Positions 1 through 64,000 of a stretch of 64,000 nt of DNA are shown one piece after another. Origin of the DNA: Auanema rhodensis. Its lineage: Eukaryota > Animalia > Nematoda. The stretch lies in NCBI GenBank assembly GCA_964057225.1, contig OZ059896.1:6138001-6202000 (forward strand), in the 5' to 3' direction. Position numbers and translations under genes: made by a program. Below the pieces are notes generated by a model, which saw nothing but the letters and a program-made list of their open reading frames with translations, ran no database searches and was not told the DNA's origin. Position 1 is the first letter of the stretch. Every line of letters begins with the position of its first letter.

Positions 1-3000
1 ACGTGAAAAATAAAGAAATGCGGTTTTTAAAATTAGATTCCCCATGTCCATATTAGTCTAAAAACAAATTTTTATTGATATTGGTGCATGGTAACCATGA
101 CTTTGAAATTTAAGTGAACTTTAATTTATGCTAATTAAATGTACACTTGATGTGCACTTGATATGTAACTCGCTTCACGTGAAAGATAAAAAGATGCGGT
201 TTTCAAAATTAGATTCCCCATGTCCATATTAGTCTAAAAACAAATTTTTATTGATATTGGTTCATGGTAACCATGACTTTGAAATTTACGTGAACTTTAA
301 TTTATGCTAATTAAATGTACACTTGATGTGCACTTGATATGTAACTCGCTTCACGTGAAAGATAAAGAGATGCGGTTTTTAAAATTGGATTCTCTATGTC
401 CATATTAGTCTAAAAACAATTTTTATTGATATTGGTGCATGGTAACAATGACTTTGAAATTTACGTTCACTTTAATTTATGCTAATTAAATGTACACTTG
501 ATGTGCACTTGATATGTAACTCGCTTCACGTGAAAGATAAAGTGATGCGGTTTTCAAAATTAGATACCCCATGTCCATATTAGTCTAAAAACAAATTTTT
601 ATTCATATTGGTGCATGGTAACCATGACTTTGAAATTTACGTGAACTTTAATTTATGCTAATTAAATGTACACTTGATGTGCACTTGATATGTAACTCGC
701 TTCACGTGAAAGATAAAGTGATGCGGTTTTCAAAATTAGATACCCCATGTCCATATTAGTCTAAAAACAAATTTTTATTCATATTGGTGCATGGTAACCA
801 TGACTTTGAAATTTACGTGAACTTTAATTTATGCTAATTAAATGTACACTTGATGTGCACTTGATATGTAACTCGCTTCACGTGAAAGATAAAGAGATGC
901 GGTTTTCAAAATTAGATACCCCATGTCCATATTAGTCTAAAAACAAATTTTTATTCATATTGGTGCATGGTAACCATGACTTTGAAATTTACGTGAACTT
1001 TAATTTATGCTAATTAAATGTACACTTGATGTGCACTTGGTATGTAACTCGCTTCACGTGAAAGACAAAGAGATGCGGTTTTCAAAATTAGATTCCCCAT
1101 GTCCATATTAGTCTAAAAACGAATTTTTATTGATATTGGTGCATGGTAACCATGACTTTGAAATTTACGTGAACTTTAATTTATGCTAATTAAATATACA
1201 CGTGATGTGCCCTTGGTATGTAACTCGCTTTACGTGAAAGATAAAGAGATGCGGTTTTCAAAATTAGATTCCCCATGTCCATATTAGTCTAAAAACAAAT
1301 TTTTATTGATATTGGTGCATGGTAACCATGACTTTGAAATTTACGTGAACTTTAATTTATGCTAATTAAATGTACACGTGATGTGCACTTGGTATGTAAC
1401 TCGCTTCACGTGAAAAATAAAGAAATGCGGTTTTTAAAATTAAATTCCCCATGTCCATATTAGTCTAAAAACAAATTTTTATTGATATTGGTGCATGGTA
1501 ACCATGACTTTGAAATTTACTTGAACTTTAATTTATGCTAATTAAATGTACACGTGATGTGCACCTGGTATGTAACTCGCTTCACGTGAAAAATAAAGAA
1601 ATGCGGTTTTTAAAATTAAATTCCCCATGTCCATATTAGTCTAAAAACAAATTTTTATTAATATTGGTTCATGGTAACCATGACTTTGAAATTTACGTGA
1701 ACTTTAATTTATGCTAATTAAATGTACACTTGATGTGCACTTGATATGTAACTCGCTTCACGTGAAAGATAAAGAGATGCGGTTTTCAAAATTAGATACC
1801 CCATGTCCATATTAGTCTAAAAACAAATTTTTATTGATATTGGTGCATGGTAACCATGACTTTGAAATTTACGTGAACTTTAATTTATGCTAATTAAATA
1901 TACACGTGATGTGCATTTGGTATGTAACTCGCTTCACGTGAAAGATAAAGAGATGCGGTTTTCAAAATTAGATTCCCCATGTCCATATTAGTCTAAAAAC
2001 AATTTTTATTGATATTGGTGCATGGTAACCATGACTTTGAAATTTACGTGTACTTTAATTTATGCTAATTAAATGTACACGTGATGTGTACTTGGTATGT
2101 AACTCGCTTCACGTGAAAGATAAAGAGATGCGGTTTTCAAAATTGGATTCTCCATGTCCATATTAGTCTAAAAACAAATTTTTATTGATATTGGTGCATG
2201 GTAACCATGACTTTGAAATTTACGTGAACTTTTATTTATGCTAATTAAATGTACACGTGATGTGCACTTGATATGTAACTCGCTTCACGTGAAAGATAAA
2301 GTGATGCGGTTTTCAAAATTAGATACCCCATGTCCATATTAGTCTAAAAACAAATTTTTATTCATATTGGTGCATGGTAACCATGACTTTGAAATTTACG
2401 TGAACTTTAATTTATGCTAATTAAATGTACACTTGATGTGCACTTGATATGTAACTCGCTTCACGTGAAAGATAAAGTGATGCGGTTTTCAAAATTAGAT
2501 ACCCCATGTCCATATTAGTCTAAAAACAAATTTTTATTCATATTGGTGCATGGTAACCATGACTTTGAAATTTACGTGAACTTTAATTTATGCTAATTAA
2601 ATGTACACTTGATGTGCACTTGATATGTAACTCGCTTCACGTGAAAGATAAAGAGATGCGGTTTTCAAAATTAGATACCCCATGTCCATATTAGTCTAAA
2701 AACAAATTTTTATTCATATTGGTGCATGGTAACCATGACTTTGAAATTTACGTGAACTTTAATTTATGCTAATTAAATGTACACTTGATGTGCACTTGGT
2801 ATGTAACTCGCTTCACGTGAAAGACAAAGAGATGCGGTTTTCAAAATTAGATTCCCCATGTCCATATTAGTCTAAAAACGAATTTTTATTGATATTGGTG
2901 CATGGTAACCATGACTTTGAAATTTACGTGAACTTTAATTTATGCTAATTAAATATACACGTGATGTGCCCTTGGTATGTAACTCGCTTTACGTGAAAGA

Positions 3001-6000
3001 TAAAGAGATGCGGTTTTCAAAATTAGATTCCCCATGTCCATATTAGTCTAAAAACAAATTTTTATTGATATTGGTGCATGGTAACCATGACTTTGAAATT
3101 TACGTGAACTTTAATTTATGCTAATTAAATGTACACGTGATGTGCACTTGGTATGTAACTCGCTTCACGTGAAAAATAAAGAAATGCGGTTTTTAAAATT
3201 AAATTCCCCATGTCCATATTAGTCTAAAAACAAATTTTTATTGATATTGGTGCATGGTAACCATGACTTTGAAATTTACTTGAACTTTAATTTATGCTAA
3301 TTAAATGTACACGTGATGTGCACCTGGTATGTAACTCGCTTCACGTGAAAAATAAAGAGATGCGGTTTTCAAAATTAGATACCCCATGTCCATATTAGTC
3401 TAAAAACAAATTTTTATTGATATTGGTGCATGGTAACCATGACTTTGAAATTTACGTGAACTTTAATTTATGCTAATTAAATATACACGTGATGTGCATT
3501 TGGTATGTAACTCGCTTCACGTGAAAGATAAAGAGATGCGGTTTTCAAAATTAGATTCCCCATGTCCATATTAGTCTAAAAACAATTTTTATTGATATTG
3601 GTGCATGGTAACCATGACTTTGAAATTTACGTGTACTTTAATTTATGCTAATTAAATGTACACGTGATGTGTACTTGGTATGTAACTCGCTTCACGTGAA
3701 AGATAAAGAGATGCGGTTTTCAAAATTGGATTCTCCATGTCCATATTAGTCTAAAAACAAATTTTTATTGATATTGGTGCATGGTAACCATGACTTTGAA
3801 ATTTACGTGAACTTTTATTTATGCTAATTAAATGTACACGTGATGTGCACTTGGTATGTAACTCGCTTCCTGTAAAAGATAAAGAGATGCGGTTTTTAAA
3901 CTTAGATTCCCCATGTCCATATTAGTCTAAAAACAAATTTTTATTGATATTGGTGCATGGTAACCATGACTTTGAAATTTACGTGAACTTTAATTTATGC
4001 TAATTAAATATACACGTGATGTGCACTTGGTATGTAACTCGCTTCACGTGGAAAATAAAGAAATGCGGTTTTCAAAATTAGATTCCCCATGTCCATATTA
4101 GTCTAAAAACAAATTTTTATCGATATTGGTGCATGGTAACCATGACTTTGAAATTTACGTCAACTTTAATTTATGCTAATTAAATATACACGTGATGTGC
4201 CCTTGGTATGTAACTCGCTTTACGTGAAAGATAAAGAGATGCGGTTTTCAAAATTAGATTCCCCATGTCCATATTAGTCTAAAAACAAATTTTTATTGAT
4301 ATTGGTGCATGGTAACCATGACTTTGAAATTTACGTCAACTTTAATTTATGCTAATTAAATATACACGTGATGTGCCCTTGGTATGTAACTCGCTTTACG
4401 TGAAAGATAAAGAGATGCGGTTTTCAAAGTTAGATTCCCCATGTCCATATTAGTCTAAAAACAAATTTTTATTAATATTGGTTCATGGTAACCATGACTT
4501 TGAAATTTACGTGAACTTTAATTTATGCTAATTAAATGTACACTTGATGTGCACTTGATATGTAACTCGCTTCACGTGAAAGATAAAGAGATGCGGTTTT
4601 TAAAATTGGATTCTCCATGTCCATATTAGTCTAAAAACAAATTTTTATTAATATTGGTTCATGGTAACCATGACTTTGAAATTTACGTGAACTTTAATTT
4701 ATGCTAATTAAATGTACACTTGATGTGCACTTGATATGTAACTCGCTTCACGTGAAAGATAAAGAGATGCGGTTTTTAAAATTGGATTCTCCATGTCCAT
4801 ATTAGTCTAAAAACAAATTTTTATTAATATTGGTTCATGGTAACCATGACTTTGAAATTTACGTCAACTTTAATTTATGCTAATTAAATATACACGTGAT
4901 GTGCCCTTGGTATGTAACTCGCTTTACGTGAAAGATAAAGAGATGCGGTTTTCAAAGTTAGATTCCCCATGTCCATATTAGTCTAAAAACAAATTTTTAT
5001 TAATATTGGTTCATGGTAACCATGACTTTGAAATTTACGTGAACTTTAATTTATGCTAATTAAATGTACACTTGATGTGCACTTGATATGTAACTCGCTT
5101 CACGTGAAAGATAAAGAGATGCGGTTTTTAAAATTGGATTCTCCATGTCCATATTAGTCTAAAAACAAATTTTTATTGATATTGGTGCATGGTAACCATG
5201 ACTTTGAAATTTACGTGAACTTTAATTTATGCTAATTAAATATACACGTGATGTGCACTTGGTATGTAACTCGCTTCACGTGAAAGATAAAGAGATGCGG
5301 TTTTCAAAATTAGATACCCCATGTCCATATTAGTCTAAAAACAAATTTTTATTGATATTGGTGCATGGTAACCATGACTTTGAAATTTACGTCAACTTTT
5401 ATTTATGCTAATTAAATGTACATGTGATGTGCACCTGGTATGTAACTCGCTTCACGTGAAAAATAAAGAAATGCGGTTTTTAAAATTAGATTCCCCATGT
5501 CCATATTAGTCTAAAAACAAATTTTTATTGATATTGGTGCATGGTAACCATGACTTTGAAATTTAAGTGAACTTTAATTTATGCTAATTAAATGTACACT
5601 TGATGTGCACTTGATATGTAACTCGCTTCACGTGAAAGATAAAAAGATGCGGTTTTCAAAATTAGATTCCCCATGTCCATATTAGTCTAAAAACAAATTT
5701 TTATTGATATTGGTTCATGGTAACCATGACTTTGAAATTTACGTGAACTTTAATTTATGCTAATTAAATGTACACTTGATGTGCACTTGATATGTAACTC
5801 GCTTCACGTGAAAGATAAAGAGATGCGGTTTTTAAAATTGGATTCTCTATGTCCATATTAGTCTAAAAACAATTTTTATTGATATTGGTGCATGGTAACC
5901 ATGACTTTGAAATTTACGTTCACTTTAATTTATGCTAATTAAATGTACACTTGATGTGCACTTGATATGTAACTCGCTTCACGTGAAAGATAAAAAGATG

Positions 6001-51000: not shown

Positions 51001-52678
51001 TGGTATGTAACTCGCTTCACGTGGAAAATAAAGAGATGCGGTTTTCAAAATTAGATTCCCCATGTCCATATTAGTCTAAAAACAAATTTTTATTGATATT
51101 GGTTCATGGTAACCATGACTTTGAAATTTACGTGAACTTTAATTTATGCTAATTAAATGTACACTTGATGTGCACTTGATATGTAACTCGCTTCACGTGA
51201 AAGATAAAGAGATGCGGTTCTTAAAATTGGATTCTCCATGTCCATATTAGTCTAAAAACAAATTTTTATTGATATTGGTGCATGGTAACCATGACTTTGA
51301 AATTTACGTGAACTTTAATTTATGCTAATTAAATGTACACTTGATGTGCACTTGGTATGTAACTCGCTTCACGTGAAAGACAAAGAGATGCGGTTTTCAA
51401 AATTAGATTCCCCATGTCCATAATAGTCTAAAAACAAATTTTTATTGATATTGGTGCATGGTAACCATGACTTTGAAATTTACGTTCACTTTAATTTATG
51501 CTAATTAAATATACACGTGATGTGCACTTGGTATGTAACTCGCTTCACGTGGAAAATAAAGAGATGCGGTTTTCAAAATTAGATTCCCCATGTCCATATT
51601 AGTCTAAAAACAAATTTTTATTGATATTGGTGCATGGTAACCATGACTTTGAAATTTACGTGAACTTTAATTTATGCTAATTAAATATACACGTGATGTG
51701 CACTTGGTATGTAACTCGCTTCACGTGAAAAATAAAGAAATGCGGTTTTTAAAATTAAATTCCCCATGTCCATATTAGTCTAAAAACAAATTTTTATTCA
51801 TATTGGTGCATGGTAACCATGACTTTGAAATTTACGTGAACTTTAATTTATGCTAATTAAATGTACACGTGATGTGCACCTGGTATGTAACTCGCTTCAC
51901 GTGAAAGATAAAAAGATGCGGTTTTCTAAATTAGATTCCCCATGTCCATATTAGTCTAAAAACAAATTTTTATTGATATTGGTTCATGGTAACCATGACT
52001 TTGAAATTTACGTGAACTTTAATTTATGCTAATTAAATGTACACGTGATGTGCACCTGGTATGTAACTCGCTTCACGTGAAAGATAAAAAGATGCGGTTT
52101 TCTAAATTAGATTCCCCATGTCCATATTAGTCTAAAAACAAATTTTTATTGATATTGGTTCATGGTAACCATGACTTTGAAATTTACGTGAACTTTAATT
52201 TATGCTAATTAAATGTACACGTGATGTGCACTTGGTATGTAACTCGCTTCACGTGAAAGATAAAGAGATGCGGTTTCCAAAATTAGATACCCCATGTCCA
52301 TATTAGTCTAAAAACAAATTTTTATTGATATTGGTGCATGGTAACCATGACTTTGAAATTTACGTGAACTTTAATTTATGCTAATTAAATGTACACGTGA
52401 TGTGCACTTGGTATGTAACTCGCTTCACGTGAAAGATAAAGAGATGCGGTTTCCAAAATTAGATACCCCATGTCCATATTAGTCTAAAAACAAATTTTTA
52501 TTGATATTGGTGCATGGTAACCATGACTTTGAAATTTACGTGAACTTTAATTTATGCTAATTAAATGTACACGTGATGTGCACTTGGTGAGTAACTCGCT
52601 TCACGTGAAAGATAAAGAGATGCGGTTTTCAAAATTAGATTCTGCATGTCCATATTAGTCTACAAACATGGTTTTATT
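1..52678. repeat. Tandem satellite DNA array, 176-bp monomer, ~299 copies, all same orientation; continues beyond the left edge of the window
   Basis: Monomer recurs every 176 bp (ACGTGAAA at 1, 177, 353...). Consensus ~ACGTGAAAGATAAAGAGATGCGGTTTTCAAAATTAGATTCCCCATGTCCATATTAGTCTAAAAACAAATTTTTATTGATATTGGTGCATGGTAACCATGACTTTGAAATTTACGTGAACTTTAATTTATGCTAATTAAATGTACACGTGATGTGCACTTGGTATGTAACTCGCTTC. Copies differ by a few substitutions and occasional 1-3 bp indels. The last, partial and more diverged copy ends at ~52678. Confidence 0.99.
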
Positions 52679-52700
52679 ATTATTTTTTATTTTATATATA

Positions 52701-52902
52701 TTATTTATTATCAGATATCTCTGCTGCTAAATCTGATCTGGAAGAAAAGATTAAATAATATTTAGTTTTCATCGCAAAAAGCTCACTTAGCGAGAAAGAC
52801 TCCTATGGGGACCGGGGTTCCCCCAGTTCTTGGACTACAGTCTAAGGACCATGAAGTTCCAAAATTTAATATAATATACAATAGTTTAAACCATGAAGCC
52901 AT
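52701..52902 (-). pseudogene. Truncated inverted copy of the gbb-2 5' end (exon 1 52787-52902, intron 52738-52786, partial exon 2 52737-52709); would encode a 50-aa peptide
   Basis: Mirror of 54140-54333. Spliced translation [52 protein letters not shown] and TAA (52709-52701) are read across the junction into the AT-rich linker. Confidence 0.85.
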
Positions 52903-54333
52903 GGCCTGCAACAAAACCTATATACAACAGTACATATATTTAAATTATATCCATAGAAATTTACACAGCAATTGTGTCAATCGGGAAGTGATGATTGTAC
53001 CTTTTCAAATTAATTATTTCTCAAAATAGAGTGAAATTCATTGAATATATGCAGTGGTGAAGTAAGGCAGCGCAGAAACAAAATCGATACGAAGCAGAGC
53101 AAGACACTTTATTGTGCCAGTTGTCCTCGACAGCGAGGCGGAGCTGTTTATCGTTGATTCTTCGGATGAATACGATATAATATTATTCATTAAAATTGAC
53201 ATCTACATTCAACAAACAATCACATTTTAGCATAAGGAATATCCCTAGTTGTGTAAAGATTTGCATGCATTGTTCAGGTTTTAACTTTTAACTATTATTG
53301 TTTAGGCTTAGCCTTTGCAGTATTCTACAAGTTCCACTGAGTTCACAATCTGAACTTTTTTGAAAAACTTTACTGTTTCAACGAGACAAATCGAATGGCT
53401 AATGTTAGTTAAAGTTCTTTTTGTTGAGATTTTTTGGAACTATTTATATTAGGTGTGCTCAAAAGTTTCTGGCCATCCGCACAAACATTTGAATAAAAAT
53501 ATTAAAATTAAAAAAAGCCATAAACCAAATTCAAAAATATATATAATAAGTAGATTTAATATTTTTAATATAAAAGTATTAAGTACCATTTATAGTATGA
53601 AAATAGAAAGATATATTTAAATTATATTATTAACTAACATTAGCCATTCGATTTGTCTCGTTGAAACAGTAAAGTTTTTCAAAAAAGTTCAGATTGTGAA
53701 CTCAGTGGAACTTGTAGAATACTGCAAAGGCTAAGCCTAAACAATAATAGTTAAAAGTTAAAACCTGAACAATGCATGCAAATCTTTACACAACTAGGGA
53801 TATTCCTTATGCTAAAATGTGATTGTTTGTTGAATGTAGATGTCAATTTTAATGAATAATATTATATCGTATTCATCCGAAGAATCAACGATAAACAGCT
53901 CCGCCTCGCTGTCGAGGACAACTGGCACAATAAAGTGTCTTGCTCTGCTTCGTATCGATTTTGTTTCTGCGCTGCCTTACTTCACCACTGCATATATTCA
54001 ATGAATTTCACTCTATTTTGAGAAATAATTAATTTGAAAAGGTACAATCATCACTTCCCGATTGACACAATTGCTGTGTAAATTTCTATGGATATAATTT
54101 AAATATATGTACTGTTGTATATAGGTTTTGTTGCAGGCCATGGCTTCATGGTTTAAACTATTGTATATTATATTAAATTTTGGAACTTCATGGTCCTTAG
54201 ACTGTAGTCCAAGAACTGGGGGAACCCCGGTCCCCATAGGAGTCTTTCTCGCTAAGTGAGCTTTTTGCGATGAAAACTAAATATTATTTAATCTTTTCTT
54301 CCAGATCAGATTTAGCAGCAGAGATATCTGATA
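52709..54333. repeat. Long inverted repeat (palindrome): arms 52709-53412 and 53630-54333 (704 bp each), 217-bp spacer 53413-53629
   Basis: Position p pairs with 107042-p at both arm ends; the mirrored 74-aa ORFs 52805-53029(+) and 54013-54237(-) obey the same sum. I found no mismatch when comparing the arms by eye. Confidence 0.97.
54127..54136 (+). promoter_or_regulatory. Candidate splice acceptor (possibly SL trans-splice site) just upstream of the gbb-2 start codon
   Basis: TTTGTTGCAG|GCCATG: a pyrimidine-rich AG ending 3 nt before the ATG at 54140, the usual arrangement for nematode trans-spliced genes. A mirror copy lies at 52906-52915 on the minus strand. Confidence 0.45.
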
Positions 54334-57300
54334 TTGAGCTACCCATGAGAACAGCTTTGCATTATATTCATAACCACTCGTGCATTTTGAACGGTTTTAA
54401 ATTGGAACCAATTTCTAAAGACACCGGGGTATGTTATCCTTGAATAGTTGATTTAAACCAAAACTTGATAATTCATTCTTTGACTGAGAAAATCAAAATT
54501 TTGCATTTGTGCGAACTTTACATTTTATTTAATTCAAGTGTGCTACATCGTTGGGAATGAGAGCGTTGTTTGAGTTGATTGCTGCTCGTCCACGTCCAGT
54601 TGCTATATTCGGTGGAATGTGCACAGAGGTTTCCAGCATTTCAAAACTTAAAAATCAATATTACTTTGTTACCAGGTCAATGAACCAGTCGCTATGGCAT
54701 TAAAGTATTGGCAAATTGTTCAGCTTAGTTATGCCGAAACACATCCTAAGTTTGCAAGCGCTGATTCCCAAGAGGTTTTTTATCTAGTCAACGAATCTTA
54801 TAAATACGCATTTGTATTATAGCTATACCCTACATTCTTTCGTATCATTCCTGGAGATAGAAATCTTAATAATGCTAAATGTCACCTAATAAACTTTTTT
54901 AAATGGAAAAAAGTTGGAACAATAAAGCAAAGTGACGAACCACGACACGCTTTGGTTATTATTTTGCAGTTTTTACTGTGTTTATCACTGTTTTTTAGCC
55001 TCATGAAACCTTGACAACAAAGTTAGAGCACGGTTACGGTATTCGTGTCGCATATACAGCTGGTATAACTTTGCGAGAACAAGAAAATATTGGGTTAGAG
55101 CTTGATAATTTGAAGGTAATAATGCATCATGAATTTAATTTTTAATTTTTGGTTATTAGGCTAAGGATGTACGTATAATTATAATGGATGTAGAGGAAAA
55201 AATGGTTACTTTAGTATTTTGTGAGGCATTCAGAAGGCATATGTATGGTGACTACTACGTTTGGATAATTCCCGGATATCATGCGAATATGTTTGTTATA
55301 CTCGCTTTCTGTAAAATTAGTTGTTCTACTAAGACAAGAATTTCAGATGGCAGCGTAGTAAAGGAAGCAACTGTAGCCGGGATGAACTAGAATTAGTATT
55401 TCGGAATCATTTTGCCCTTCAGCATGCTTTGTCAAGGAATGATGTGAACACAGAGATTGTTGGCGGCAAGGTTTGCATAGTTTTTCTTTAAATTGATCAA
55501 TTCTCCTATCTTTATTTGTTGCAAACACTGCTATTTTCTATATGATATCAGAAAGCCGGAGACATCTGGGACGAGTTGGCTGTGTCTTCCTCTTTATTAC
55601 GAGGATATGTATACGATGGTTTATGGGCTTTGTCAATTGCTTTAAGCCAGGCACTTGGTCGAGATGCTTCGTTTTCGCACGCAAAGCTATTAAATGCTAT
55701 ATATAATACTTCTTTTGAAGGCGTAACAGTACATTGCAATTTTTATAAATTTATATAATTAAAAACTATTTTTAGGGCCGTATACAATTTGAGAACAACG
55801 AGCGGTTGGGTCTTGTTGATATTATGCAATGGAGATCAAATGAATATATTTATGTAGGCCGATACGATGGAGCAGGGAATACTTTTACTATGGATAAATC
55901 TAAAATTAGTAATTTTTTTTTTTGTGTACTTTTAAATGCGAATTTAGAATGGAAGCCACCTCTGGACTCTACTATCATTGAGATTCGCAGTGAATATATT
56001 ACTTATTCTTTGTTCTCTGCAATGTCATTCGCTTCTCTAATTGGTATAGGTTTAGCAATACTATTTTTATTTCTAAACGTGAAATATCGGAATCATAGGT
56101 TGGTTTTTGCTCTCGACTCATCCCTACTTTTTCGTTCTTTTAGATTTATCAAAATGTCATCACCAAATCTAAATAATATAATTATTTTCGGATCCATTTT
56201 CACATTCGCGTCAGTTATACTTCTAGGTCTTGACACTCGTGTTTTGTCTTCAGATGAATTTGTGAAAATGTGCTACGTAAGTATAAATAACTGTTATTTA
56301 ATGAATGTTCTAAAACTTTGTTTAAGGCTAAAACTTGGACATTATCCTTAGGGTTTACTTTAGCTTTCGGAGCGATGTTTTCGAAAACGTGGAGGGTTCA
56401 TTCGATTTTTACTAATATTCGTATGGATAGAAAAGCTATAAAAGTCATTCATTACATATTTCTTTCCTCCTTAATTGTTATTCAGGATTCTAAACTATTT
56501 ATGATTTTGGGTTTTCTTCTGATGGTTGATATAATAGTTCTCTCTGCTTGGGCAATTTTTTCACCTTTTCACATTACTGCCACAGAACTGCCTAAAATAG
56601 TATATACTCGTGTTACAGTATATATTCTTATTAACTCCAACTATTTTAGCAAATGGACTATAATGTTATTGTGCCTATGGTTGAAAGGTGTCAATCAGAG
56701 TACTCCATGATTTTTCAAGCAACTCTTTATGTATCCAAGGGAGTTTTAATGGTAAATAAACCATAAACTTGAAAAAATAATTATACATATATTCTAGGTT
56801 TTGGGTTGCTTTTTGGCTTGGGAAACGCGACATGTGAATGTACCTGCTTTGAACGATAGTAAATACATTGGAATGAGTGTTTATGGAGTAGTAGTAACCA
56901 GTATTCTAGGATTAAGTATCAGCGTAATACTTCAGGTTTATTTTTTTTCAGTAAATACAACATTTTATATATCAGGAGAGGGTTAACGAGGCTTTTGCTC
57001 TCACCTCGTTTTTTATAATTTTTTCTACAACTGTAACCTTATGTCTGGTGTTTGTTCCGAAGGTATATACCATTTAATTTTATTTTTACACGAAAAAAAT
57101 AACAACTAGGTTGTGGAATTAATTCGTAATCCACAAGGAAGCGAACCTCGGGGTTACCGACGTGGTATGATGAAATCTGTCGTTGCAAAGTCCGCACCAT
57201 GTAATCAAATTGTATCGAATATTACAAAGTTAAAATTAATGACATATCACATACTTTATACATTCTTTTTTAGGAACATCCGAGAAGCAGATAAAGATTT

Positions 57301-58650
57301 GTTAGCAAAAGTCGAAACTGAAAATCAACTAAGAAGGCGCTATTTACATCAGGTTAAAGTTTTCTCATTCTTTTCATGTGTTCTTCAATTTTTTAGAAAA
57401 GTAGTCAGCTTTGGGATTTATTAGCTCATTTGCGAGAGCTAGGAGATACTCAATTTCTTCAACAAGGTATAACTGAAATATGGTTCCAAGTTTTTTATAT
57501 TTTAAGTTTATATTATGAGATGGTGAAGCTCTTATTTAATAATATGTTGATACAAAAAAAACATAGTATATTATATTATATTATATTATATACTAATACA
57601 GATAAATAAGAGTATATAGTAATAACAATACATGCGAAGATTTTGAACTTCTTTTCCTGAAACGATATAATGGAGCATCATAATTACAATAGTCATAGGA
57701 GCAACAGCAAAATTCGCTTTCTAAAACGTTATCTATCTGATCCGTATGTGCTCTTTGTTTCAGAAATAGTTCCTAAAATATTAATTTAATTATCTAATAC
57801 TTTATGACTGAATGCCTGAATGTCAGGTTTCAGATCATAAAGTGACAGACACTTTTCATGCATTCCTTTGTTGATACATTCACTTTCAAAAGCACAAAAC
57901 CGATCCACATTCTCTTCGAGTATGCCTGATTTGTTAACTGTGTAATATTCGAAATAGCATTTCTAAAAATATGAAATAAAAAATGCTTCACTCATATTGA
58001 GTACAGTAATACTTATATTCATAAAAAAAAGACTTAAACATTTTGAAAACAGTTACAATCATAAAATTACCATATTTGGCGCTTGACATAGTGTGCTATA
58101 TTCGGCATGAATATCTTGAGTATCATAGCATTCCAAAGAGATTGAAATAGGAATAAAAAGGAGGAGTGCAATTATTTGTTTCATTTTTCGGTGGTTTTCA
58201 ATCCTTGTTTTAGAATGGTGCTATATAAGCAGCAGCTGGAATACTGAAACAGAAAGTGATCGACTTCTGGGACAGCATAGGTGAGAGAATGGCACACCTC
58301 CATTGCTTTAATAAGTTTTATATTACATTGACTATCTCATTTTGTTTGCTAAGCAGAGCATAATGAAAACGAATTAATTCATGAGATTAATGCTAACGAC
58401 TTTTTGTTTCAGTAGTGTGGACGATTCTTCAGGATTATCAAATCGTGAGTTGTTTGAAACAGTTAATTTAAATAATGAAAAGTTTTTTTTGGTAATTCTG
58501 TATTAATTCAAACACAATCATTAATTCCCAAACACTATGTTTGTGGTTATCTTATTATTTAACTTTTATAATAACTTTAAAGAATTTTTAGCAACACAAC
58601 AAGAAGGATGGCCTTGGGTTGATCCTGACGAGCCAAGTACTATGCTTTAA
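54140..58650 (+). CDS. gbb-2: GABA-B receptor subunit 2 (class C GPCR), 23 exons, ~836 aa
   Basis: Phase-compatible GT-AG exons: 54140-54255, 54305-54428, 54539-54628, 54676-54774, 54823-54954, 54999-55115, 55160-55290, 55347-55470, 55552-55728, 55776-55908, 55948-56098, 56144-56276, 56327-56443, 56486-56599, 56650-56751, 56798-56935, 56976-57062, 57110-57228, 57274-57352, 57397-57466, 58214-58280, 58413-58444, 58592-58650 (2511 nt). Has a signal peptide and a Venus-flytrap domain ([61 protein letters not shown]). GABA-B 7TM motifs: [65 protein letters not shown]. Followed by a coiled coil and ...[14 protein letters not shown]. The subunit-2 call rests on my recollection of C. elegans GBB-2. 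Confidence 0.92.
57567..57591. repeat. (TATAT)n microsatellite, ~5 units, just past the nested gene's stop codon
   Basis: TATATTATATTATATTATATTATAT read directly. Confidence 0.8.
57593..58184 (-). CDS. Nested antisense gene: three-finger-fold protein (Ly6/uPAR / activin-receptor-ectodomain-like), secreted or GPI-anchored, 146 aa, 3 exons
   Basis: Exons 58184-58071, 57962-57816, 57772-57593, all phase 0; the second intron is 43 nt GC-AG. Translation: [146 protein letters not shown]. Signal peptide, LxCY start, 10 Cys, CCCxxDxCN motif, hydrophobic C-terminal tail. Confidence 0.85.
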
Positions 58651-59388
58651 TTATTGAACAGATCACTGACTATTTGATTAATCTATAGCATTCCTAAAAC
58701 ATTAACAGAAGAAGAAATTTCTTATAAAAATATCTTCTATAACTTGATTCTTCCAAAGTTTTCTTTTACACATTTAAAGAAATAGAGAAGTCCTGGATGT
58801 CCAACTGTTTTCCAAACAAATTGATGAATCATAAGACAAGGGCTCATCCTTGATAATATTCTATACCATTATGTGTGGAATTAAGTTTTTCATATTTCAG
58901 CACTTTGTCTAAAATCTCCTATTGACTCATGATTCAGCGTTCCACTTATAATGCATGACATCCATTATGTATATTTATATTTCCTTAATATTTTTACACA
59001 CACTTGATACTATTTTTTGGCTCTTGTTGTCGTCATTATTTGCCAATGTACGGTTGAAACTAATTTAATTGTCTACTACTTCATAACTGTAGAATAAAGT
59101 TCAATTCATATATGAAAAAGCAATGTTTAATTAGTAGTGTCAAAATTTGTATGGCTTATGCAATAATAAAATTTGTATACGTATAAATGTATTAATAGAC
59201 TCAATATATTATATAAGCGAAATAACAAGAAGATGAAATAATTTAATTGATTTCCATATTTCATGCGGAAATTAATTCCCATAATTGCATCATTGATTCG
59301 TTATCCTATGTAAATATTGCTCTGTATATTTAAAATATTGAACACATCCGTAGATATTAATTCATATTACGATAAATAATATTTATAT

Positions 59389-59863
59389 CTATTCAAAGAT
59401 CATTCTTTGCAACTGAATGAAAGAAAATATTGTAAAAACAAAAAAGACAAGAATAAAATAAATGTCTCGAAACAATTGTATATAATTGCCAGACACATTA
59501 ACAGGAAAAATTATATATACTCTCGTCATTAATTCACTCGCAAAAGTTATCTATGCATGTGATACTTCAGTTTAGTGTTCGATTATGGTGCATGAAGAAT
59601 GTTCGTATCTATTAAAATGAAATATTTAACAAAACTCATCAAAAATTGTTTTTTAAATATATAATGTATGTATATAAGTGAATAATGCAAGATCATGTCA
59701 TTATGGATAGTATGCAAAAAATGGGCACTCGTGATGAAATTAGCAATTCCAATCTTATGCAATGGTGGATATTTGGTCATTGATAGCTATCTGTAATTAA
59801 TGTGGTCTGCTTATTTATGAATTCAGCTAACAACTATTCCAAATAATTTCTTAATGCCGAATC

Positions 59864-59897
<34 letters not shown>

Positions 59898-60359
59898 GAT
59901 TCGTTATAATATGTTATAGTAATTGCTAGTTTAAATATATTACCTTATTATATAATTGAAAAATATCAGATATCATAGTTACGACGAATGATGGTACAAA
60001 TAAAAAACTGGAATGAAGACACAAAAATAAAACATCTATTTAAATTACTACAAACTTTACTACAAATCAAAACTTCGAATTAGCAATATTAGGTATGATA
60101 CATCAGCAACTAAAGCATACAGTGAAGCTACAGAAGAAAAAAAGCAGCTCATCAGAAATAATTTTTTAGATCTATTTTGGCAGTATGTATTCCGAATAAT
60201 GATCAATATCAAAAGTATATACAATACGGTTATACTATGTATTGGTAAATATATCAAAACATCGAGCAGGTAAAAATTAGTAATTCGTATTTTGTTTTTG
60301 AAATCATGATTAACTGAGAAGTTATCATACAAGATATCGTAATAATTCAGCTCTTGCAT
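59389..60359 (-). CDS. Possible multi-exon hydrophobic (serpentine-receptor-like) gene or pseudogene; incomplete model
   Basis: The 99-aa ORF 60359-60060 has two TM-like stretches. It can be spliced (GT at 60063, TTCCAG ending 60008, 56-nt intron) in frame to FFLFVPSFVVTMISDIFQLYNK, which ends at a good AAG|GTAAAT donor (59944). Further hydrophobic frames lie at ~59786-59635 and ~59550-59389, but I could not build a full stop-free model. AT-rich DNA mimics hydrophobicity. Confidence 0.3.
59858..59903. repeat. Perfect 46-bp palindrome: (AT)15 flanked by CGAATCAG / CTGATTCG
   Basis: CGAATCAG-(AT)15-CTGATTCG is self-complementary at every position (p pairs with 119761-p). Confidence 0.9.
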
Positions 60360-60937
60360 TCTTAGTAAGTGAAAATGGAAAATTTTCTTTCAATTATTAA
60401 ACAATTTACTATAAAAGAATAAAAAAAATGAAGATTGCTTCATATTTAATTATTGGCTTCTAACTAGAACTTCAGCGGTGGCATGTGATGTCCATACACA
60501 TGCATAACGTTTAACATTTTCAAAATTAACATTTACACAACATTTACAACAAAATCAACATTTTCAAAATTAGGGTACACTGCATGAAACTGAGATGCTC
60601 AATTTTTTATATAGATGAAAGACTACATTCTTGGACATTACGAAGATGACGAATAGAATTTATAACTTCCAGCTTCTAATTTTCTTACAAGCGAAATTTT
60701 ATGATTAGGTTATTACATTTTATGGGGTAATAACAATGAGCCATTCAAGAACCATGCAGATAAGTGCTTTCTAACTTTTGCGACATATTATTATATTGAT
60801 TACTCCAAATAAATTCAAAAACTTATTTAGTTTATTTTTTGGCATTATTGTTAGAAAATCATTAGAGGCCATGTTACTGCATATTCTAAAATAGATAAAA
60901 TCTACGTATACTATGTTCAAACCTAGGTGACACAAAG

Positions 60938-61433
60938 ATGAATATTCAAGCAGTTTTAAGCTCATTTGTTCTTGCTATAGGCGCTGTTATGATTTGCGTA
61001 ACTTCTCGAACGTAAGTCAGACGATCATACAATGCTCCGTTCACGATAATGTACACACTAGTATATTAGATATACGTATCAAATTAATCAATTAAAATAA
61101 CATGTATTGTTTTAGCTTTGACATTATAGCATTGATGATGATGGTGAACTAACCGGGACTTCAGGCAAAGCAGTTAAAATTATTGGTATTATTATGACAT
61201 GTATAGGCGGATGTGGATATTTATTTACCATATATGAAGTTGTAAGTTACATTCAATATAGTCATTCAGATATGTTTTTATTGAAGATAAAGCGAGGTCA
61301 TCGGAAACTGGCCAAAGGAGAACTCAGGAAACTTGAGAAACAGGCTAGTATTAGAATCCTCACACGAAATTTAAATTCAAATTTCAAACAACGCTTGCAG
61401 GTTATACAACGAAGAGAAACTATTAAGTCATGA
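60938..61433 (+). CDS. Putative small two-TM membrane protein (~90 aa), unknown family; N-terminus may extend upstream
   Basis: Exons 60938-61011 (donor GTAAGT), 61130-61238, 61287-61343, 61401-61433 give MNIQAVLSSFVLAIGAVMICVTSRTIDDDGELTGTSGKAVKIIGIIMTCIGGCGYLFTIYEIKRGHRKLAKGELRKLEKQVIQRRETIKS*. The last two introns (48 nt GT-AG, 57 nt GC-AG) are in frame and explain the ORF-track ORF 61194-61433. A competing acceptor at 61115 would truncate the protein. Confidence 0.5.
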
Positions 61434-61626
61434 TTTTAATCACTCGTCAGTTGCTCTGTTATGTGATTTATTGTGAAAGTTTATGATAATTTATTTTGTA
61501 AATTGTAACTTCATGAAAGTTTGGTACCTTATCGCCTACTTTGTGTGAAATCGTGTGGGCTAGTTCAAAACACAAAAATGTTGTTTATCGATTTTTGAAA
61601 TTTTTATCTATTTCTTTACTCTTCCT

Positions 61627-61711
61627 TCCTGTGTTTAGAGTTCTTTCTTGTATTTAGTGTTCCATCTTGTATTTAGTGTTTTTTCTTGTATTTAGTGTTT
61701 TTTCTTGTATT
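61627..61711. repeat. 19-bp minisatellite (TCTTGTATTTAGTGTTTTT), ~4.5 copies
   Basis: Units start at 61627, 61646, 61665, 61684 and 61703. Confidence 0.9.
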
Positions 61712-61850
61712 ACACTTAAACTACCATCTTTCCAGTTTTACGCCTTATAAACTAAATACAATTCGAATTATCTTTCTAGCTATAAATTATTTTATAATAT
61801 TCTCATAATACAAATTTTTTATTCATCATTTGGTGTTTTTTTCGGGACGC

Positions 61851-63768
61851 ATGGGTTTGTTCAAATATTTCTGTATTACCTCAATTGCTGCCATTGCAAT
61901 ATACTTTCATGTCACTACCGATGTACTGGATCCCACGATCTATGTAAGATATATTCTTGAAACAACATCTGTTTTTATTTAATAGATGACTTTCAGAGTA
62001 AAGAAGACAAATGGTATGGCACAGGCAGTAAACGAGAAGATGATGAAATTATACAGCCTTTCAAAGTGTCCGTTCCTCAAAATGTTTTAGAGGTTAGTTG
62101 AAATTTTACACAATCTATAGTTTTATTCATTTCAGGATTTGAAGCAGCGTTTAATATCGTCAAGAATTTCACATGATCAATTAGAGGATGCTAATGATTT
62201 TACTTATGGTTTCAATTCGAAGTATCTGGTTTCACTCAAGGTATCTGATATTCTATTTTTACTTATTACAATATATATATATATATATATATAATATAGG
62301 ATTACTGGATCACGGGATATGATTGGAGGAAATATGAAAAAATCTTAAATTCATTCAATCAATTTAAAACCGAAGTTGAAGGATTACAAGTTTATAAAAT
62401 ATCTTATATTCGCACATGTGATTATAAATAAATGCAGATACACTTCATTCATGAGAAAACAACGAACGAAAGCGCTAGAAACTATAAAGCTATCGTTCCC
62501 ATCTTAATGGTTCATGGGTGGCCCGGGAACGTTTTTGAATTCTATAAGGTCATTCCTCTTTTAATTGATCCAAAGAAGCACGGATTGTCATCAGACGTTG
62601 GTTATACTTTAGCAAATTGATTAATACCTTCATTTATCTTATTTACATTGAAGATTGCTTTTGAAGTCGTGATTCCTTCAATACCGGGCTATGGCTGGTC
62701 TGATTCTCCAAAAAAAAGAGGTTTTATCTAAAGTTTATTGTCGTATGTTCAATGTTTATATACAGGATTTTCTCAAGTGGAATGTGCGAGACTGTTTCAT
62801 AAATTAATGAAAAGATTAAAAATCGATAAATATTATTTACAAGGAGGTGACTGGGGCTCCGTAGTTACGAGTTCCATAGCTAGAATTTATCCAGAAAGGT
62901 TTGATTTATGAAAACATTATTTTCTAAAAATAGTTAATTTTTTCAAAATTTAGTATTTATGCTCTTCATTTGAATATGGTGTCTGTATTCCCAGGAACAA
63001 CATTTTTATCTACTGCATATGATATCTTAGCTACATTTTTCCCTAGATTGATGCTTACATCTTCAAAACTTCAGCACAATACGTTTACAAAATTAGGAGA
63101 AATAATGTCTGAAGCAGGATATATGTATATTCAGGCCACCAAGCCAGATACAGTGGGTCAGTTTATCCTTTACTATTTTTTTATAGAACGATATTTTTCT
63201 CACCCAGTTACTTTCAATTTGAAATATCTAAGTCATAATAAATTTTAGGAACAGCTTTAAACGACTCTCCCATTGGCCTTGCTGCTTATATCCTTGAGAA
63301 ATTTTCTACATGGACCAATAAGGAAAATATAAATTTGCCTGATGGGGGCTTAGCAAAGTATGTTTTATATAGTATTTACATCTATTATTTTTGCTTTAGA
63401 AAATTTTCGAAAGATGAGCTTTTAACTATGATCATGATTTACTGGTCAAATGGCAATATTGTGAATTCTCAAAGATTTTATAAAGAATGCATACAAGATG
63501 ATCGTATTCCAAAATTATCAAAGTTTTTTTTTTTCTGTTTTTGTTTTAACTCTTAATTTGCAGAGTTTACCTCAAGGTACCAACTGGACATTCCTCTGGT
63601 TTGAATGAACTTTTTGATAGAACACCTGTTGAGCTTTCAAGAATGTTCATGAACGTGACTTTTTACAATGAGATTCCTGATATGGGCCACTTTGCTTGTT
63701 TTGAAAAACCAATGGAGATGGCTAAAGATATACTAGCCTTTGTAAATATTATTCATTCTCATTTGTAA
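61851..63768 (+). CDS. Microsomal epoxide hydrolase (EPHX1/JHEH family alpha/beta hydrolase), ~11 exons, complete
   Basis: N-terminal anchor MGLFKYFCITSIAAIAIYFH; EHN-type region (KWYGTG, IQPFKVSVP..LEDLKQRL, FTYGFNSKYL, YW...YDWRKYE, QFKTEVEGLQIHFIH). Catalytic motifs: HGWPG oxyanion motif, PSIPGYGWS, QGGDWG nucleophile Asp, GYMYIQATKPDT, LNDSPIGLAAYILEKFSTWT, SQRFYKE Tyr, NEL acid, GHFACFE His. TAA ends at 63768. Confidence 0.95.
62271..62292. repeat. (AT)11 microsatellite in an epoxide hydrolase intron
   Basis: Read directly. Confidence 0.85.
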
Positions 63769-63782
63769 ATTTTAATTATAGT

Positions 63783-63788
63783 AATAAA
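63783..63788 (+). terminator. Polyadenylation signal AATAAA of the epoxide hydrolase gene
   Basis: AATAAA 14 nt after the stop codon, followed by T-rich sequence. Confidence 0.55.
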
Positions 63789-64000
63789 AAACTTTTCGTC
63801 TTTGTTCTAAATATACTGTTAGAATTAAAATCCTAAGTAAATGATACTTTCTCACAAGAGAAACTGAAAGCCAGCCAGACACTGGTTCAGTTAATACCAT
63901 TTACATAATCTGATATTTCGAATGAACTGTCAATAATATTTAGAACAATGGAACGAAGTGCTTTCATTACAATCTTTGTTGGCATATAAACGTATTTATG

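Follow-up and report, generated by a model that had tools for sequence, protein, structure and literature searches.

A probable young inverted duplication straddling a predicted DNA-elimination boundary on chromosome 3 of Auanema rhodensis

An exact palindrome at the start of a receptor gene

We analysed a 64,000-nt stretch of the nematode Auanema rhodensis (A. rhodense below; positions 6,138,001–6,202,000 of contig OZ059896.1, here C4, in GenBank assembly GCA_964057225.1), referred to as the window, in which an exact 1.6-kb palindrome at 52709–54333 stands between a satellite array and a predicted GABA-B2-like receptor gene and most likely straddles a site of programmed DNA elimination (PDE). 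An initial annotation had described the palindrome as an inverted duplication of the 5′ end of this gene, and two independent scans bear it out: a repeat search resolves two arms of 704 nt (52709–53412 and 53630–54333) that are 100% complementary and enclose a single-copy spacer of 217 nt (53413–53629), and a separate exact-run scan recovers identical arm limits. The window is free of N gaps. The right arm (plus strand) comprises 510 bp of DNA upstream of the gene, the first exon and intron, and exon 2 up to its nucleotide 29. The left arm (minus strand) holds the same elements as reverse complements, at 107042 minus the right-arm position: nucleotides 1–29 of exon 2 at 52709–52737, intron 1 at 52738–52786, exon 1 at 52787–52902 (mirrored ATG at 52900–52902) and the 510-bp upstream region at 52903–53412. 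Because the right arm runs on into the gene, the left arm is the copy.

A genome-wide search of the 180.9-Mb assembly recovers the arm at these two places only, exactly the two hits that had been expected, and the arm is therefore not a dispersed repeat. An inverted and a direct copy parted by a single-copy spacer is the arrangement of a fold-back inverted duplication. The outer flanks differ (TTATT on the left, TTGAG on the right), leaving no target-site duplication. Both inner arm ends read TTAA, which the initial annotation took as a hint of origin; only beside the ancestral allele could this be informative, as the ends of every inverted repeat complement each other. No tRNA and no Rfam family was found within 52–58 kb, covering the arms and their vicinity.

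Open reading frames (ORFs) and splice sites on the plus strand predict a first exon of 116 nt (54140–54255, ATG at 54140) followed by a 49-nt GT...AG intron (54256–54304), with the rest of the gene at 54305–57470 (3′ limit approximate; exon 2 at 54305–54428, exon 3 from 54539). The exon 1 peptide has a signal-peptide-like N terminus and ends in VPIGVFLAK. The arm stops 29 nt into exon 2 (54333) and, as first reported, the reading frame crosses this limit, continuing through exons 2 and 3; the peptide quoted there contains a slip, the sequence reading HYIHNH and not HIIHNH. Exons after exon 3 encode the ligand-binding and seven-transmembrane (7TM) regions. Searching the exons one at a time, not as a joined spliced model, we obtained Pfam 7tm_3 matches for three exon ORFs (E 6e-14 to 5e-8) and a weak ANF_receptor match for one (E 0.0011, 18.5 bits against a Pfam cut-off of 25.4). 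Against solved structures, one 7TM exon, taken singly, matches GABA-B subunit 2 (E 6e-17) ahead of subunit 1 (E 1e-10), and exon 2 alone gives no match. These results point to a class C G-protein-coupled receptor, probably GABA-B2-like.

To the left, a 176-bp satellite array of 299 copies fills 1–52668 (plus strand; Tandem Repeats Finder). This satellite is enriched at the ends of large contigs, and the array, predicted to be germline-restricted, belongs to the terminal tandem-repeat block of ~6.19 Mb on C4. Each monomer also contains a palindromic 13-mer (CATGGTAACCATG) and three boxes of the type ACGTGA/CACGTG. Comparison with the monomer in register shows that the satellite/left-arm junction is occupied by ~40 nt of AT-rich, non-satellite filler (52669–52708), for which a k-mer search of the non-satellite part of the window (52709–64000) found no template of at least 12 nt. 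The spacer includes the truncated end of a miniature inverted-repeat transposable element (MITE) at 53445–53560 (plus strand), of a family that we take to be mariner-like from its terminal inverted repeats (TA, then TTAGGTGTGCGCAAAAGTTTCTGGCC); this copy has CTC in place of the CGC of the family repeat. The family has at least 36 dispersed relatives (75–90% identity, contigs C1 and C3–C8, TA flanks), full copies spanning ~250–750 bp between inverted repeats. Candidate satellite remnants in the spacer, filler or inner flank were rejected, their alignments reaching only shuffle or chance level.

Paired candidate break motifs at a repeat-to-gene transition

Body cells of A. rhodense drop 61% of germline DNA, including the terminal autosomal tandem-repeat blocks, and each of the 28 internal break sites lies at a repeat-to-gene transition and overlaps a palindrome of 29 nt, the Sequence For Elimination (SFE), at whose centre telomeres are added (bioRxiv 10.64898/2026.08.27.747507; assembly of strain APS4, 180.9 Mb, PacBio HiFi plus Hi-C). 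In the related Oscheius tipulae, a conserved GGC-N3-GCC centre of the SFE primes telomere addition (bioRxiv 10.1101/2022.08.19.504554; PMC13060919). We found that the published A. rhodense break on 'chromosome 5 around position 16,502,174' coincides with the exact centre of GTTTAGTTCAGGCT-C-AGCCAAAACAGAAA at C6:16,502,174/5. This shows the assembly to be the published one and the motif core to be AGGCT-N-AGCC, in agreement with the O. tipulae centre.

Each arm of the palindrome carries one such SFE-like 29-mer. That of the left arm spans 53295–53323 (centre 53309, C4:6,191,309; core AGGCTTAGCCT at 53304–53314) and that of the right arm 53719–53747 (centre 53733, C4:6,191,733; core AGGCTAAGCCT at 53728–53738). 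The two mirrored cores, both AGGCT-N-AGCCT, are the sole core matches in the window. We scored them with a position weight matrix based on 10 further sites, all a few hundred bases from a satellite edge and of which only that at C6:16.50 Mb is independently anchored (leave-one-out scores 20–39 bits); both 29-mers reach 30.4 bits, and the next best in the 64-kb window −0.1. The twin motifs are 424 bp apart, that of the left arm lying on the satellite side of its partner.

With satellite to the left and genes from 54140 to the right, the motifs occupy a repeat-to-gene transition, as SFEs do, and the position, C4:6.19 Mb, fits the 5–7 Mb size of the terminal blocks on other autosomes. Contig C4 corresponds to chromosome 3 by size rank (C6 to chromosome 5 by the published coordinate and C7 to chromosome 6 by mre-11). 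The window most likely contains the boundary at which the left terminus of chromosome 3 is eliminated. This context was missed in the initial annotation: the palindrome most likely spans a PDE site and doubles its break motif.

Work in O. tipulae suggests how a doubled motif might behave. There, an SFE inserted on the retained side of the native SFE is cut and the intervening DNA lost, and alternative SFEs within eliminated DNA are cut alongside the canonical one and used when the canonical is mutated (bioRxiv 10.1101/2022.08.19.504554; PMC13060919). If the retained-side rule holds in A. rhodense, the somatic chromosome would start at the right-arm motif, with 53733, which precedes the ATG by 407 bp, as its predicted end and the place of telomere addition; a neuronal receptor gene would then begin ~0.4 kb from a somatic telomere. 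The ~730 bp of upstream DNA first credited to the gene would shrink, in body cells, to a predicted ~407 bp followed by new telomere. The left-arm motif at 53309 is a predicted alternative break signal on what would be the eliminated side, with left arm, spacer and satellite all predicted to be germline-only. We expect telomere addition at C4:6,191,733 with a minor site at C4:6,191,309, the 424-bp fragment between the cuts being lost.

Elsewhere in the assembly, G000:C8:14217199-14234700 contains six identical SFE-like motifs, one every 3495 bp. This array matches the periodic 3.5-kb X-chromosome cluster reported for A. rhodense, in which five are counted (bioRxiv 10.64898/2026.08.27.747507).

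Duplicated motifs at other boundaries

We compared 13 boundaries, one of them (C6:16.502 Mb) in a 600-nt context only. A local SFE duplicate is present at eight, inverted in six cases and direct in two. Beyond the present locus, twin-SFE palindromes occur at five further boundaries, with arm identities from ~93% to 100%. The other terminal boundary of chromosome 3, at C4:18.367 Mb (G000:C4:18365500-18369500), has exact arms of 1726 nt (169–1894 and 1961–3686 of that piece) around a 66-nt spacer, each with an SFE-like motif (AGGCTAGGCC core, 22.9 bits), the two motifs lying 1069 bp apart. A minus-strand coding-like stretch, putatively a transposable element, lies beyond its right arm. At C7:4.740 Mb, arms with one mismatch in the 1194 nt compared surround a 112-nt spacer; each carries an SFE-like motif, and copies of mre-11 lie ~2.2 kb from the centre on both sides. 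Divergence is greater at C1:18.004 Mb (460 nt aligned, 96.5% identity, three gaps, 157-nt spacer) and C3:4.999 Mb (two blocks of 98.5% and 92.8%, 109-nt spacer), and C3:19.211 Mb has a short pair with motifs 96 bp apart.

The direct, tandem duplications that include the SFE lie at C1:5.566 Mb (G000:C1:5564117-5567803) and C8:5.50 Mb (G000:C8:5499211-5502804); one of them has a 660-bp unit at 100% identity and the other 567/485-bp units at 96–99%. A single SFE is seen at C5:5.339, C5:17.155, C6:10.673, C6:16.502 (within its 600 nt) and C12. In 47 kb of non-boundary DNA we detected no inverted repeat of at least 80 nt.

The palindromes share a polarity. Their inverted copy always lies on the eliminated side, adjoining satellite (as at C4-left, C1-right and C3-left), and their centres fall 48–534 nt outside the SFE, the usual width of the unique flank between SFE and satellite where the SFE is not doubled, consistent with a lesion at the edge of the satellite. 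The phase of the satellite monomer at the junction differs between C4-left and C1-right, indicating independent events. Recurrence with varied arm identity argues for a real, recurrent process and not an assembly chimera.

Fragments of a 351-bp satellite lie in the spacers at C1:18.004 and C7:4.740 Mb. A motif of ~47 nt (..GTGCATTCGATGCG..GAGCTGCGTCGATC..) is common to these two spacers and the boundary at C6:10.67 Mb (1773–1929 counted from C1:18002154; 1195–1306 of the C7:4.740 piece; 895–1076 of the C6:10.67 piece). We rejected it as a second boundary signal: it belongs to the 351-bp terminal satellite and has over 3000 candidate copies. Close to the right boundary of C5, on its inner side, two mutually reverse-complement 19-mers at C5:16963798 and C5:17020029, 56 kb apart, may mark a larger inverted duplication.

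For chromosomes 1, 2 and 3, the published description lists a second high-scoring motif at most 1.1 kb away on the eliminated side, and it records reads with telomere sequence at eight SFEs of eliminated DNA; the words inverted duplication, fold-back and hairpin are absent from its main text (bioRxiv 10.64898/2026.08.27.747507). Our comparison suggests that the tabulated 'neighbouring SFEs' are mostly palindrome arms. Fold-back duplications and alternative SFEs are each of a known kind; what is new is the finding that neighbouring SFEs are the arms of palindromes, at six of the 13 boundaries examined.

The locus resembles several known systems in part. It has the features of rhabditine SFEs in A. 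rhodense and O. tipulae, namely a degenerate 29-nt palindrome with a GGC-N3-GCC centre at a repeat/gene junction, and like alternative SFEs its second copy lies a few hundred base pairs into DNA that is, here by prediction, eliminated. Unlike known alternative SFEs, the second copy belongs to one arm of an exact palindrome in which retained DNA, with the start of a gene, has been duplicated as well; alternative sites in O. tipulae were described just as 'recently duplicated' (bioRxiv 10.1101/2022.08.19.504554; PMC13060919). The fold-backs of Hermetz et al. 2014 (PMC3907307) likewise pair an inverted with a direct copy around a short single-copy spacer, their distal end joined to other DNA, but extend over kilobases to megabases against 0.7 kb here; at our locus, moreover, the retained side has suffered no loss, and the copied sequence sits in DNA that the soma is predicted to discard.

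Another comparable case is the mre-11 palindrome of chromosome 6 (C7:4.740 Mb), where an eliminated MRE-11 copy beside its somatic paralog has been reported (bioRxiv 10.64898/2026.08.27.747507). It too straddles an elimination boundary with an SFE-like motif per arm and a ~112-nt spacer, but is much larger, copies whole genes, has lower-scoring motifs (21 bits) and shows that single mismatch in 1194 nt. In Tetrahymena, the rDNA palindrome forms beside a chromosome breakage sequence (Yasuda and Yao 1991; Butler et al. 1995; both cited in PMC5182062), and programmed breakage is similarly tied to a palindrome around a short non-palindromic spacer. That palindrome is a programmed somatic event of every development, centred next to the break, whereas the one in A. 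rhodense is a heritable germline feature whose centre lies 212 nt from each break motif.

Origin of the duplication

These observations are best explained by a genuine and young inverted duplication across the left terminal PDE boundary of chromosome 3, a reading to which we assign a probability of roughly 77%. The ancestral order would have been satellite, ~320 nt of unique eliminated flank (now the spacer together with the innermost 103 nt of the arm), SFE, 407 bp and the GABA-B2-like gene. Repair of a break or stalled replication fork at the satellite edge may have proceeded through fold-back priming or two successive template switches, 704 nt being copied in reverse from a point 103 nt to the outer side of the SFE, across motif and promoter region, as far as nucleotide 29 of exon 2; the AT-rich filler of ~40 nt would mark where the new end was then rejoined to satellite. 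The combination of inverted copy, single-copy spacer and distal foreign join is the signature of a fold-back or an equivalent two-switch replicative event, and by the form of the product a fold-back or template-switch origin, already suggested in the initial annotation, appears the best supported.

In pre-somatic cells of the early embryo, both SFEs would be cut and healed by telomeres, the body-cell chromosome starting at 53733. The truncated mirror gene start in the left arm (~50 residues, then a stop) would be lost with spacer and satellite, and the left-arm SFE may act as a back-up break site. Lying in DNA that the body would never keep, the mirror copy would cost nothing, and boundary location together with a doubled break motif would explain why the palindrome is tolerated.

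Several points weigh against this account. The palindrome is read from assembled sequence, and both the cutting at 53733 and 53309 and exon 1 are predictions from it. Nine of the 10 matrix sites were found with a pattern taken from this locus, making the matrix partly circular. Perfect identity over 704 nt is equally expected from an artefact, and the repair pathway cannot be read from the product by itself.

Selection could be keeping the duplication as a fail-safe second break site, an idea compatible with a fold-back origin and in keeping with the use of alternative SFEs in O. tipulae, both alongside the canonical site and when that site is mutated. Local duplicates at eight of 13 boundaries, six inverted and two direct, would be expected on such a view; yet five boundaries have a single SFE (one seen in 600 nt only), and weak selection in eliminated DNA suffices for tolerance without any benefit. 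We regard a selected fail-safe as rather doubtful.

Could the palindrome instead be old, its arms held identical by arm-to-arm gene conversion like those of sex-chromosome palindromes? The lack of any difference between the arms, over 704 nt at this locus and 1726 nt at C4:18.367 Mb, would suit this, and the presence of such palindromes at several boundaries could mean that they persist for long. Divergence, indels included, is seen between the arms at C1:18.004 and at C3:4.999 Mb, however, so conversion is not keeping arms identical indefinitely. Under an assumed C. elegans-like mutation rate, zero differences in 2 × 704 nt allow an age of up to ~0.8 million generations; 'young' is therefore relative, and conversion is not needed. 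The initial annotation had offered a very recent event or conversion, of which a young age is the part we favour and conversion the part we consider unlikely.

The elimination machinery itself might have triggered the fold-back, through an SFE-type cut in the germline that escaped telomere healing, much as a programmed break beside short inverted repeats yields a large palindrome at the Tetrahymena rDNA. Palindrome centres do stay within the narrow 48–534 nt outside the SFE even where arms reach ~1.8 kb and ~9 kb. Those centres are not at the SFE, though, and a half-SFE is absent at the spacer edges of five palindromes, where half-site scores do not exceed 6.7 bits (genuine half-sites score 13–22, and the best background score is 5.3); the pieces of 351-bp satellite in the C1:18.004 and C7:4.740 Mb spacers fit a break at the satellite edge. 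A machinery-triggered origin is distinctly unlikely on this evidence.

A chimeric fold-back read might also have been built into the assembly at the germline-to-somatic coverage step, the true germline having no left arm. The arms are indeed 100% identical, and the locus would sit at a roughly eightfold change in coverage, from 29x to 236x. Against this, the assembly was made with hifiasm from PacBio HiFi reads of unamplified DNA sheared to 15 kb, which excludes the amplification chimera entertained in the initial annotation; the 217-nt spacer consists of normal genomic sequence, part of a MITE included, and not of adapter; and the left arm has a specific satellite junction without a gap. Palindromes of the same design elsewhere have diverged arms (96.5%, 93–98%, one mismatch in 1194 nt) and cannot be read artefacts, and second motifs are reported near break sites on chromosomes 1–3. 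We judge an artefact very improbable.

A MITE or foldback transposon with 704-nt terminal inverted repeats, which the long inverted arms around a short middle and the MITE fragment might bring to mind and which the label 'MITE-like' had implied, can be rejected: the arms exist in two copies in 181 Mb, TTATT and TTGAG form no target-site duplication, the arms consist of host promoter, exon 1 and intron, one of them continues into the gene, and the only MITE end lies in the spacer.

The fold-back reading, if right, offers a base-resolved example of a programmed chromosome-breakage site gaining a spare copy, and shows a route by which pieces of ordinary genes enter germline-only DNA. It bears on the evolution of elimination boundaries, in a system first described months ago. 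More tentatively, and as a possibility that we consider less likely than not, elimination boundaries in A. rhodense may be hot spots repeatedly rebuilt by fold-back, a source of alternative SFEs and of germline-restricted gene copies (the GABA-B2 promoter and exon 1 here, mre-11 on chromosome 6), with the boundary favouring or triggering the event because the edge of the satellite is fragile or because the breakage machinery leaks into activity in the germline.

Downstream of the receptor, exon-like ORFs of a second gene lie at 62432–63768. They contain an HGWPG motif, seen by eye, which is reminiscent of epoxide hydrolases.

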